Shown piece by piece: positions 29,168 to 55,370 of a DNA stretch of 64,000 bases. Location of the stretch: NCBI GenBank assembly GCA_964188305.1, contig OZ076893.1. One strand, written 5' to 3'. The notes beneath the pieces are model-generated. The model was not told the DNA's origin. It did no database searches and saw only the letters and a program-made list of their open reading frames with translations. This DNA is from Podarcis bocagei (lineage: Eukaryota). The position numbers were made by a program, and so were the translations under genes. How positions within the stretch are numbered: position 1 is the stretch's first letter; each line of letters begins with the position of its first letter.

Positions 29168-29385
29168 CAAAATAAAAAAATTCCTTCCAGTAGCACCTTA
29201 AAGACCAACTAAGTTAGTTCTTGGTATGAGCTTTTGTGTGCATACAATACATGGTGTATCTGAAGAAGTGTGCATGCACACGAAAGCTCATACCAAGAAC
29301 TAACTTAGTTGGTCTTTAAGGTGCTACTGGAAGGAATTTTTTTATTTTGACTATGGCAGACCAACACGGCTACCTATCTGTAACT
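29168..29385 (+). mobile_element. Penelope-like element end with inverted partial terminal repeat and 12-bp TSD
   Basis: Arms 29168-29243 and 29274-29349 are reverse complements (1 mismatch); AGAAATAGTGGT at 29156-29167 and 29386-29397. Confidence 0.85.
29256..29293 (+). ncRNA. Minimal type I hammerhead ribozyme motif (PLE-associated)
   Basis: GTAT (stem I) CTGAAGA A GTGTGC-AT-GCACAC (stem II) GAAA GC TC ATAC (stem I'); palindromic AGCT in place of a stable stem III. Confidence 0.75.
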
Positions 29386-50562: not shown

Positions 50563-50600
50563 TGCTAACCACATTTTTTTTGCTTATTTTTGTTTTACAG
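50563..50600 (+). promoter_or_regulatory. KCNB2: Branch point, polypyrimidine tract and 3' splice acceptor of the terminal KCNB2 exon
   Basis: TGCTAAC (branch A 50568), T-rich tract, TTTTACAG ending at 50600, followed in frame by ATT TTG GCC (ILA). Confidence 0.93.
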
Positions 50601-52772
50601 ATTTTGGCCATTGTATCTATTTTGTTCATTGTGCTGTCCACCATTGCTTTGTCACTCAACACTCTACCTGAGCTTCAAGTAATTGATGAATTTGGACAAC
50701 TAAATGACAACCCCCAGCTAGCACATGTAGAAGCTGTGTGTATAGCTTGGTTCACTATGGAGTACCTTTTGCGTTTCCTGTCATCTCCAAACAAGTGGAA
50801 GTTCTTCAAAGGTCCATTAAATGTGATTGACTTGCTGGCCATTTTACCCTACTATGTCACCATTTTCCTCACAGAATCCAACAAAAGTGTGCTGCAGTTC
50901 CAAAATGTCCGCCGTGTTGTTCAGATATTCCGTATTATGAGGATACTCAGGATCCTTAAACTTGCCAGACACTCGACAGGCCTTCAGTCTTTAGGATTCA
51001 CACTCAGGAGGAGTTACAATGAATTGGGTTTATTGATATTATTTTTAGCAATGGGCATCATGATATTTTCCAGTCTTGTATTTTTTGCTGAGAAAGACGA
51101 AGATGCTACAAAGTTTACTAGTATCCCTGCATCATTTTGGTGGGCCACCATCACTATGACTACAGTAGGCTATGGTGATATATATCCTAAGACTTTACTA
51201 GGTAAAATTGTTGGAGGATTGTGTTGCATTGCTGGAGTGCTGGTAATTGCTCTACCTATTCCCATCATAGTAAACAATTTCTCTGAGTTTTATAAGGAGC
51301 AAAAACGGCAGGAGAAAGCCATTAAACGAAGGGAGGCACTTGAGCGAGCAAAAAGAAATGGAAGCATTGTCTCAATGAATCTAAAAGATGCCTTTGCCCG
51401 CAGCATGGAACTGATTGATGTAGCCGTGGATTCCGGTAAGACTGAGGAAGCAGCCAACTCCAAGGAAACCCCTGACGATAACCACTTATCTCCAAGCCGG
51501 TGGAAATGGGCCAGAAGGACAATGTCTGAAACAAGTTCTAACAAGTCCTTGGAGAATAAATATCAGGAAGTGAGCCAGCAAGATACCAACGAAAAGCTCA
51601 ACAATATTGTTACAGCCTCCAGCCCCCAACACTTGAGTGCTCAGAAACTCGAAATGTTATACAATGAAATTACTAAAACTCAGTCTCAGCCTAATCTCAA
51701 TGCCAACTACCAAGGCCCGTCAGCGAAACCTCCCTTATATGAGGAGGAAATTGAAATGGAAGAGGTTGTTGGGCAAGGAGAACCATCCATGTCAGGGAAA
51801 AGAGACATAGTGACGGACATGAGAAGCATTTCCAGCATTGATAGCTTTGCCAGCTGTGCAACCGATTTCACTGAGACAGATCGGTCTCCCTTGCCCCCAT
51901 ACTCTGGTTCTCACCTGCAGCTAAGGTTCCCACCTGACTCTGTCCATTTGGAAGACCAAAGAGCAAAGAGTTCTCAGTTTTTATCACACACCAAGGATAA
52001 AACGTTTGCCCCCAGAGACGTCACCTTTGAGTACTCCCCAGTTGATACAGCCATGAACATGGATAACGCTGGCTCCCAGTCTCTTCTTCATGGCCCTTTG
52101 CACTTTGACAGCTCCATGTTAAGTCCCAAAAGTTCTCTCAAAGGAAGCAATCCATTAAAAGCAAGGTCCCTTAAGGTTAATTTTAAGGAAAACAGAGGTG
52201 GCGCTCCACAAACGCCACCGAGTACTGCAAGGCCACTTCCAGTAACAACGGAGGCAGATTTCATGCAATCCACCCCTCCTCAGCATATCAGCACCATTCT
52301 CTTAGAAGAGAATTCACCACATGGCGACAGGCCCTTGCTGGGTGCTGATGCCTCCATGGTTTGCCAGAGCATTCCTAAGAAATCATCCCCTTCTCTGTTT
52401 CCAAAACAAAAGCTTTTTACTTTCCCTTCCAAAGAGAGGAGAAGCTTCACCGAAATGGACACTGGAGAAGAAGACGACTTCATGGAGATTCCTGGAATAA
52501 CAAGACATGACAAAGAGCAGGATATCAAGACAAACTGCTATGGGGAAAAACACAAAGATGGGAACCATTTAACAGAAGAGCCTCGAGTCAGCTCTTCTTC
52601 CCCCAAAATTTTGGGGCAAAACTGTACACAAGACATTTACTGTGTCGGGGGGGATGTAAAAGGCGACAATAGCCAAGAAGGTCACAAAATGGAAAACCAC
52701 TTGTTTCCCCCAGAAATCCATACAAATCCTGGAGAAACTGGCTACTGTCCCACACGGGAAACCAGCATGTGA
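50601..52772 (+). CDS. KCNB2: Terminal coding exon of Kv2.2 (Shab-related voltage-gated potassium channel); 723 codons + stop, phase 0
   Basis: Translation [26 protein letters not shown]...; S4 [21 protein letters not shown]; pore TVGYGD (51162-51179); S6 PIPIIVNNF (Kv2-type PIP); PRC motif [12 protein letters not shown]; C-terminus [10 protein letters not shown] is KCNB2-type rather than KCNB1. The N-terminal T1 exon is outside the window. Confidence 0.97.
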
Positions 52773-55370
52773 CTAGTCAGGAGAGCAATAATGACAAAAA
52801 CTGATTTCTTAAAACCACAATTAGTAATGCCTATGAACTAAAACATGGGAAGCCTCAGAAGTAAAAAAAAATATATATGTTATTTTTGCATGGCATGAAG
52901 AGTTGATTAGTTTAAGTACTGTTTAATTTAAAAGTGGAAAATCTGCTTTTTTTGTAACAAAAAAGGAGAAAAAAATCAGTTAAAAAAATGATGCAAGAAC
53001 AGTGAGTAAAATAAAGAGCTCTTTTAGGAGCCCATATTCTGCAATGTCTGACATTTTTGGTCCTTTCACTAATGATTGTAGATAAGTTTTTTTAAAAAAA
53101 TATTTTAACTTTTTTTGCTCTTGGTTATAATGAATTTTGGGAATTTGCACATGAAAGGATGAAATGCCGATGCATGTTTTCATAATGGTGTGAAACAAGG
53201 TGCTTTGAACCTGCAAAATGCATACATTTGTAAATAGTTTGGGTTTGCGGGGAGATCTACAGTTATCAAGGATATGTGGAAAATACGTTTCCCGGGACAC
53301 AGGTACTTCCTTCACAGTTTGCTGCCTGGAGGATTTGTACAGACTTATGTTGCAAAATTGCAACTTCTTCTTAAAGCATCTCACCTATCTTGCTTTCTGT
53401 TTAAAAGCTCATAAAGTATAAGCTGTTTGTTTAAGTAAATGACAGTGTTTTCTCATCTATCTGTGAAGTAAATCATAGCTCAAATTATTTTTATTTGCAT
53501 AGATTTCACGGATATATTTGCAAGTTTTGAGTAAAATTCTATTTAGACTGTGCAAGATTTAATGACCAGAAATTGAAAACTTGATATAAGAACTGCCAAA
53601 ATCAAAACAAAGACAAGGACACCATTACGTTATATAATAAAATTATTTCTATGGCAATAAAATGTGCCAAATGGCCATGAAAAAATGATTATTTTATATT
53701 TAAAAGTTCAAAAGTTTGTATTACAGTTACAATTGCTGTATGCACTATTGTTAATATCTTATTTTTTTAAATGAAGTTTTTGTGGTTGTAAGTTTGCTTC
53801 TAAAATCTCTTTAGGAGTGCTGTGGCTTTTGTCCACCACTTCTTTACCACTAGGCGCCCCAATTTTAGATAACTTATTAATTTCAGAATACCAACATGAT
53901 TACTCTTTCTTGAATCACCAGACAAGGATTGCTGCTTTATGAGCAAAGTTGGAAAACTCAGAGTAGACAATCTTTTCATTGTGCCCAGCCTCTATTTCAA
54001 TTTTGCAAAAGTGGTGTTTTATACAGACTTTGCTGTGGGCAGTTTTGCGCTATCGGGTTTTTCATATCTAATTATTGCAATTAATTAACAAATTAACAAA
54101 ATCATTTGAAACTTCTGTGGATTTCTTCTTCTTCATGCTCTTCCATCACATGCATTCTATGTTAATCAATAGGATAAAAGCTCTCCTGCAATAAGATAAA
54201 ACAGCATGTGAACGGAACTTTCCAAATTGTGTACCTTTTACCCAAATTCCAATAATTTCAGTAGAATAATTATTTCTGTAAATTTAAAGAAGCTGTTCAA
54301 TGCATTAAAAATATTTTCAAATCACAAAACAATATTGGACCTAATAAGCTTAATAATTTTAATTTTCTAATAAAAACAATATTCTAATTTGGGGGGGAGA
54401 GTTCTTCAACATAAAACCTTACCCACTTACACTGATTTTACTCAGTGCAGACCACTTAAAATTCATGTTAGCTTCAACAGAATAATTTCTAATATAGCTG
54501 AGCAGAATTCAAAATTTCTCATATGCTTTCTTAAAGGAAATTTTCCTTTAATTTCCTTTCCTTTTTTCCTTTTTCCTTTTCCATTCTTTTTTCTATTTGG
54601 CTGCAAACAGCTTTCAAAGAGAAAACTGGGCCTTATCCTGTCGCCCTCAGGTTTTACTTTTATAAGGAAATGTCACCATCATGTATTTAATATGTGTCTT
54701 TTGGACCAAATACCAAGCACAGCAAAAGTCATCTTTATTTTTTTCCAATTCTTAGACCCTTTTTAATACTTGCCTTTGTTTTTAAATACAGTATCTCCAG
54801 ATATTTCTCTTAAGAATTAATAATGCAGTTAAATGTCATTTCTTAAAAAACAAAAAACAATGTCTGGTCATTAGGTCTCAAAATATGCATTTGTTCCTCA
54901 TGGCTGTCCAGGTAATTATATTTCTGCATATGATTTAAGTTAATTATGTGGCATTCTGCTTAATCCTTTTCAATGACCTCCATTTTATTTTATGAACTTC
55001 CTTTGTTTATGTCTCTTGTTTTATTGATAGATATTCCCATTGACTGAGACTAAATGCTAACTAGCTTTTAAAAGACATTGCTCTGTAATTTCTGTACTTT
55101 TTAAACACCATGCTGCCCTATTTGATCTGTCTTCATAATGACGACCATATAAAGAACAAAACCAAAGGCTAAATGAAACCTTGGGCTTCGGTTGAAAATG
55201 GGAAGTTGGTCACTGATTTCAATGAAATCCTAGTTTCATTCATAATCCTTACCCAGGGAAAACACTTGTTGGCTACCATGACTGTTCTATCATGAGCTAT
55301 AGGTGGAAGGATCCAAAGCTAAAATATGCTCTTTTCATATGTAATAAACTATTCCTATCTTCAGAGCCCT
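52773..55370 (+). other. KCNB2: Proximal KCNB2 3' UTR (AT-rich, essentially free of recognisable transposons); true end uncertain
   Basis: Follows the stop; AATAAA at 53010, 53636, 53656 and 55343; TGCATG at 52887 and 53171; TGTAAATA at 53229. Confidence 0.65.

Follow-up and report, generated by a model that had tools for sequence, protein, structure and literature searches.

Introduction

Two groups of vertebrate genes that end in UGA_CUAG are the closest described counterparts of the stop codon studied here, that of KCNB2 (Kv2.2) in a 64,000-nucleotide (nt) stretch of DNA from the lizard Podarcis bocagei (GenBank assembly GCA_964188305.1, contig OZ076893.1; hereafter “the window”). In the first group (AQP4, OPRK1, OPRL1 and MAPK10), this context drives 7–31% readthrough (Loughran 2014, PMC4132726). 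Deletion of CUAG abolishes the effect, and with UGA-CUA alone readthrough is about 1.5%; ca. 12 nt 3′ of the stop are sufficient, without any need for a 3′ RNA structure (PMC4132726). KCNB2 resembles these genes in that UGA_CUAG is conserved across vertebrates, in its expression in the brain and in the lack of a required downstream structure. It differs from them in what follows: their extensions have positive coding scores and conserve both length and C-terminal residues, whereas those of KCNB2 vary from 6 to 56 codons, shift frame and lack a coding signature. The second group, LDHB and MDH1, undergoes functional UGA_CUAG readthrough despite negative PhyloCSF scores (PMC5868278) and thus offers a precedent for an extension, such as that of KCNB2, that does not score as coding. 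LDHB and MDH1 owe the function to a peroxisomal targeting tripeptide that readthrough places at their C-terminus. What has been proposed for KCNB2 is, by contrast, a loss (masking) of the old C-terminus, and the new end (PMN, PVS and others) bears no recognizable motif.

KCNB2 has itself been studied in this regard. In a search of all human transcripts, 23 genes were found to end in UGA_CUAG against 39 expected (Loughran 2018, PMC5868278), and human KCNB2 is one of the 23 (Table S1 of that paper). Its cassette is AGC ATG TGA CTA GTT ACA AAA, with 8 readthrough codons. Seventeen previously untested 21-nt cassettes were assayed in HEK293T cells, and each yielded 1.3–6.7% readthrough, compared to 0.7% for UGA_C; the KCNB2 cassette was in the tested set, and its oligonucleotides are given in Table S2 (PMC5868278). 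Positive PhyloCSF scores were obtained for only 4 of the 23 genes, of which KCNB2 is not one (PMC5868278). According to a deep-mutational-scanning preprint of 2026, the effects of CU at +1/+2 and of CUAG hold across genes, and the CUAG motif acts locally, via the ribosome and eRF1. KCNB2 appears neither in the supplements of Loughran 2014 and Smoljanow 2025 nor in the text of that preprint. As a UGA_CUAG readthrough candidate, KCNB2 is already known and was reporter-tested in 2018; no discovery is therefore claimed. The first-pass annotation of the window had treated UGA-CUAG as an established high-readthrough context of vertebrates and had suggested that human KCNB2 ends in it, and the literature bears out both statements (PMC4132726, PMC5868278).

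What is added here is the conservation of the signal throughout the tetrapods, the invariance of the C-terminal ETSM across jawed vertebrates and the untranslated-region-like evolution of the extension. Taken together with the published measurements, these observations make it probable that lizard KCNB2 carries a conserved, already catalogued leaky stop, at which a few percent of the subunits acquire a lineage-variable tail that is unselected as protein.

The KCNB2 stop site of Podarcis bocagei

The following features, all on the + strand, define the site.

50601-52769, +: last coding exon of KCNB2 (Kv2.2), 723 codons, covering S1 to the pore, S6 and the long cytoplasmic C-terminal tail
52758-52769, +: E-T-S-M, the normal C-terminus of Kv2.2 (codons GAA ACC AGC ATG)
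52770-52772, +: annotated KCNB2 stop, TGA, read from the sequence (TGA at 11/11 orthologue sites)
52773-52776, +: CTAG, the core readthrough-promoting motif, immediately 3′ of the stop, read from the sequence
52773-52838, +: potential readthrough extension of 22 sense codons, LVRRAIMTKTDFLKPQLVMPMN, by translation
52839-52841, +: second in-frame stop, TAA, read from the sequence

The exon is directly preceded by an AG splice acceptor (50599-50600). Its product matches the Pfam families Kv2channel (7e-147), Ion_trans (2e-53) and Ion_trans_2 (5e-13), and its top protein match is KCNB2 of Zootoca vivipara, with 97% identity over the C-terminal tail. The region was therefore taken to be the last exon and the 3′ untranslated region (3′UTR) of a lacertid KCNB2, a gene that has two exons and a span of more than 100 kb in Hemicordylus. 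The final sense codon is ATG (52767-52769), and with the recoded stop included, the extension adds 23 residues. The first-pass annotation was exact as to this arrangement, from ATG-TGA-CTAG (52767-52776) to the closing TAA, and as to the translation.

The lizard stop context is identical to the tested human KCNB2 cassette from -6 to +8, a stretch that includes AGC ATG, UGA and CUAGU. From +9 the two differ, GTC AGG AGA in the lizard standing against GTT ACA AAA in human. The human extension amounts to 8 codons counting the stop, compared to 23 in the lizard. The whole 21-nt human cassette is identical in alligator, giant panda and a neognath bird (L015).

Neither the open frame nor the heptamer is informative when taken by itself. 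Stop-free runs of at least 22 codons begin at 27–29% of positions in the real 3′UTR and intron of the window (compared to 14% of composition-matched random sequences), and because such runs are common in this AT-rich window, the open frame after the KCNB2 stop is unremarkable. The heptamer TGACTAG occurs four times on the + strand of the window and six times on the - strand. As both are common by chance, the evidence must rest on the placement of the heptamer at the stop codon and on its conservation.

Conservation of the stop context

Orthologues were drawn from single-exon gene models, short-read assemblies and one unbiased metagenome scan, in which the probe was the 19-nt 3′UTR block downstream of the second stop. 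This probe returned 15 loci, of which only 3 contained KCNB2. The final comparison comprised 11 vertebrate sites including the lizard, 10 of them from tetrapods: a second squamate (L002), a snake-like squamate (L022, hereafter “snake”), a tinamou (L001), the neognath bird (L015, identical to L019), Alligator mississippiensis (L004), Chelonia mydas (L021), giant panda (L003), a primate-like placental (L011, stop context only), the frog Ascaphus truei (L023) and the sturgeon Acipenser sinensis (L005). Teleosts, marsupials, monotremes and geckos lie outside the sample.

A TGA stop followed by CTA was found at all 11 sites. The complete CTAG is kept in 9 of the 10 tetrapods, the snake having CTAA; the sturgeon has CTAT. 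In the last 10 codons of the coding sequence, third positions vary at 7/10 among the tetrapods, while no position of TGACTA does. The conservation of UGA-CUAG thus spans at least the frog and the mammals, and that of UGA-CUA reaches the sturgeon, a wider distribution than the amniote-wide one envisaged in the first-pass annotation. Lizard KCNB2 belongs with the UGA_CUAG genes on two counts, in that its UGA stands directly before CUAG and the motif is conserved across vertebrate orthologues.

The specificity of this conservation was gauged from its surroundings. Within the first 200 nt of the KCNB2 3′UTR, 70 of 200 columns are invariant across the 10 tetrapods, and 12 of 194 other 6-mer windows, including those of the AGCAATA and TTTTGCATGGCATGA blocks described below, are fully invariant. 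Since these windows are as invariant as the stop context, the conservation of TGACTAG is inseparable from the general conservation of the 3′UTR. The placement of TGA-CTAG at the stop, together with its conservation, exceeds chance, though it is only moderately specific.

These figures bear on an explanation that goes further than a leaky stop, namely that selection maintains KCNB2 readthrough tetrapod-wide because any tail, whatever its sequence, would remove the free ETSM and let subunits escape a putative PDZ-type scaffold. We regard this explanation, which is the masking idea of the first-pass annotation at its strongest, as unlikely. The signature that it predicts is seen at the stop: UGA-CUA is invariant, no change from TGA to TAA or TAG occurs in 11 lineages, and the neighboring third positions vary. 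The human depletion of UGA_CUAG (23 genes against 39 expected) also counts in its favor, because it means that long retention of the context is not the default. Against it stand the lack of specificity of the invariant block (12/194), the adjoining AGCAATA and GCATGGCATG blocks, which betray strong non-coding constraint beside the stop, and the loss of the G of CTAG in snake and sturgeon.

Evolution of the extension

The extension is open to the homologous second stop, T[AG]A, in five sauropsids only: the lacertid (22 codons), the second squamate (22), the two birds (20 and 20) and the alligator (19). The homologous stop falls outside the reading frame in four others, namely the snake, the turtle, the panda and the frog. 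The snake, with 1 nt deleted, has an extension of 12 codons; the turtle, with 1 nt inserted, has one of 34 codons; and the frog reads on for 56 codons in another frame. The placental extensions have 16 and 7 codons, and that of the sturgeon has 6. The primate-like placental has the homologous stop in frame 0, yet its extension closes after 7 codons, at an in-frame TGA that comes first. Microsatellites directly follow GCAATAA in both placentals, (ATA)n in panda (L003 3682-3702) and (AAAAC)n in L011, and these alter how long the potential extension is and in which frame it runs. In total, the frame of the extension is broken in 5 of the 10 tetrapods (snake, turtle, two placentals and frog).

Codon-level statistics agree in showing no protein-level selection. 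Invariant columns at codon positions 1/2/3 number 9/9/8 in the extension, compared to 18/25/8 in the last 30 real codons. In the five in-frame species, synonymous changes make up a fraction of 0.31 of the codon differences in frame 0; the control frame 2, which is wholly open in the alligator and contains one stop in the lizard, gives 0.28. The ratio of nonsynonymous to synonymous divergence (omega) is 0.17–0.53 in the extension and 0.10–0.19 in the last 300 codons of the coding sequence; synonymous divergence (dS) of the extension falls below that of the coding sequence (0.5–1.3 in its last 300 codons). The extensions of the two birds have five nonsynonymous differences and no synonymous ones, such that omega is undefined (dS = 0). 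Mean identity is 0.75 in the extension (34% of columns invariant) and 0.76 in the 68 nt that follow the second stop (40% invariant). A conserved coding extension was rejected on the grounds of the frame breaks, the lack of codon periodicity, the frame controls and the omega and dS values. The KCNB2 extension evolves as constrained untranslated sequence without protein-level selection, and it is not a conserved extension of the kind found in AQP4, OPRK1, OPRL1 and MAPK10. The absent coding signature agrees with the published PhyloCSF results, in which only 4 of 23 UGA_CUAG genes were positive.

The first-pass annotation had proposed a candidate readthrough isoform; these results do not support a conserved one of 22 residues. 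Of the points that it had named for an alignment across amniotes, conservation of CTAG was found (except in the snake), and conservation of the second-stop position was not.

A narrower form of the coding hypothesis would be a functional peptide limited to non-snake lepidosaurs and archosaurs, with the conserved end ...L-V/A-M-P-M/V-N/S. The second stop is in frame in all five of the sauropsids listed above, the differences in length (+6 nt and -3 nt) are multiples of three, and a C-terminal LVMPMN is common to lizards and birds. Only two in-frame indel events underlie the preserved frame, however, for which the chance is about 1 in 9, and single-base indels break it in the snake and the turtle, which are nested among these lineages. 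The open frame 2 of the alligator (and its single stop in the lizard), the absence of periodicity and the excess of nonsynonymous differences in the bird pair (5 vs. 0) likewise speak against such a peptide. Finally, the nucleotides that encode LVMPMN are conserved to the same degree in mammals, turtle and frog, in which they are out of frame or past a stop. We therefore hold a sauropsid peptide to be very improbable.

Conserved blocks in the proximal 3′UTR

Two further features of the + strand are relevant to the constraint on this region.

52784-52791, +: block AGCAATAA, within the extension and 12 nt past the stop; all 10 tetrapods share AGCAATA unchanged
52880-52898, +: TTATTTTTGCATGGCATGA, ultraconserved 3′UTR block downstream of the second stop, with two GCATG motifs

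The conservation of AGCAATAA points to constraint at the nucleotide (3′UTR) level rather than at the coding level. This block may be a seed match (8-mer) for miR-137, a microRNA of the brain. Given its position within the would-be extension, translating ribosomes would then be in competition with the silencing complex. The block TTATTTTTGCATGGCATGA is identical in the nine amniote sequences that have the full 19-mer. Its invariance across the 10 tetrapods holds only from TTTTGCATGGCATGA on, because the first T is missing from the snake sequence (L022) and the frog (L023) reads TTAATTTTGC. The sturgeon retains TTTTTGCATGGCATG, the core of the block. The pair of GCATG motifs resembles binding sites of the Rbfox type. 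Several blocks of the proximal KCNB2 3′UTR are ultraconserved, TTATTTTTGCATGGCATGA among them.

Constraint of this kind could also account for the stop context itself: there would be no meaningful readthrough in vivo, neuronal termination would be efficient, and TGACTAG would be kept as a 3′UTR regulatory element (a site for an RNA-binding protein or a microRNA). The ultraconserved state of the proximal 3′UTR (70/200 columns) accords with such an element, as does a ribosome-footprinting study of mouse brain, in which no CUAG enrichment was seen among the readthrough calls. All tested human UGA_CUAG cassettes, that of KCNB2 included, nevertheless exceeded the UGA_C background, and CUAG acts locally through the ribosome and eRF1 across genes. 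Nor is there a conserved RNA structure at the site (z-score 0.40, no covarying pairs; see below). On balance, termination without appreciable readthrough seems a distinctly unlikely account of the locus.

RNA structure and other recoding signals

The segment 52761-52862 (102 nt) was predicted to fold with a minimum free energy of -13.2 kcal/mol, no better than shuffled sequences (z = 0.40). The consensus fold of eight orthologues had an energy of -6.6 kcal/mol with no compensatory or covarying pairs. A stimulatory 3′ stem-loop or pseudoknot was rejected on these two results, the z-score and the lack of compensatory changes.

A complementarity between the two stops was also noted. The first-stop context CAUGU..UAGUC (52765-52779) is complementary to the second-stop context AACUA..ACAUG (52833-52848) in most amniotes, and the consensus fold joins CAUGU and UAGUU of the first stop to AACUA and ACAUG of the second. 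The ACAUG arm is missing in the frog, and the pairing energy is weak; two conserved blocks probably match here by coincidence.

Selenocysteine recoding of the UGA was rejected because the 3′UTR holds no selenocysteine insertion sequence (SECIS). In a scan of the whole window against Rfam at the gathering threshold, no SECIS was found, and K_chan_RES (RF00485, potassium channel RNA editing signal) was the sole family reported; no hammerhead family came up at 29256-29293, within the KCNB2 intron. The match to this family is full-length (51165-51278, + strand), with 92.3 bits against a gathering score of 51 and E = 6e-18, and it falls within the part of KCNB2 that encodes the pore and S6. It may represent either a real adenosine-to-inosine editing hairpin in Kv2.2 or merely the sequence conservation of the pore region.

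The ETSM terminus

All 120 listed orthologues, from shark and sturgeons to mammals, end in ETSM. By inspection, E-T-S-M conforms to the pattern of class I PDZ ligands, X-[S/T]-X-hydrophobic, with T at -2 and M at 0. The first-pass annotation had made the same pattern assignment, to which the invariance of the motif can now be joined. Class I PDZ ligands are known at the C-termini of other channels and pumps, e.g. ETDV in Kv1.4 and ETSL/ETSV in PMCA. Kv2.2 is like these proteins in having a hydrophobic-ending motif at its extreme C-terminus and differs in that its last residue is Met, not Val, Leu or Ile. A terminal Met is atypical of class I ligands.

It is plausible that a readthrough tail would hide a putative PDZ-type ligand in ETSM. 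The masking function sketched above would need no conserved extension, and the negative coding signature therefore does not refute it; a non-conserved extension of variable length is, in fact, what it predicts. The invariance of ETSM in the 120 orthologues is in keeping with it as well. A further point in its favor is amplification by tetramerization. If a fraction p of subunits is extended, the fraction of homotetramers with at least one extended subunit is 1-(1-p)^4, i.e. 5%, 8%, 19% and 24% at p = 1.3%, 2%, 5% and 6.7%, respectively. The first-pass annotation had argued that tetramers would multiply the effect of a few percent readthrough, and its arithmetic holds: over the published range of 1.3–6.7%, 5–24% of channels would be affected. 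On the other side, the literature searched yielded no report of a PDZ domain that binds the ETSM of Kv2.2, and the atypical terminal Met also counts against such a partner.

Discussion

The reading of KCNB2 as a conserved leaky stop with an unselected tail can be put in mechanistic terms. The CUAG 3′ of a UGA in the A site would weaken recognition by eRF1, and a near-cognate tRNA would sometimes win. Such decoding would be expected at about 1–7% of termination events. A UGA that is read through is decoded as Trp, Arg or Cys. Most Kv2.2 subunits would consequently end in ETSM, and a few percent would carry the recoded residue and the tail. What conserves the nucleotides of the tail would be a stop-proximal 3′UTR element. 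We infer that readthrough also takes place in lizard neurons, where it would block the free carboxyl end of ETSM.

Several considerations weigh against this reading. The lizard sequence departs from the human one from +9 onward, and the human cassette alone was measured; positions to +12 and beyond can modulate readthrough efficiency. KCNB2 is not named in the group of about 5% in the text of Loughran 2018, which may place it near the low end of the measured range. Reporters in HEK293T cells may be a poor mirror of neurons, and the mouse brain footprints cited above show no preference for CUAG. From the opposite direction, TGA-CTA has stayed invariant through the split of frogs from amniotes and that of the sturgeon, and this could be a sign of selection on readthrough itself, in which case “incidental” would be too weak a word for it.

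For annotation, the outcome is that the KCNB2 extension should not be marked as coding. The present results also help to rank KCNB2 among the UGA_CUAG genes that have negative PhyloCSF scores. If readthrough occurs in the lizard, its products would be a junction of ETSM-(Trp/Arg/Cys)-LVR and the peptide TDFLKPQLVMPMN. Should KCNB2 readthrough be shown to matter, it would be a case of recoding that removes a C-terminal ligand rather than one that adds a motif, and ligand-removing readthrough of this kind, if real, would be missed by design in screens for coding potential such as PhyloCSF.

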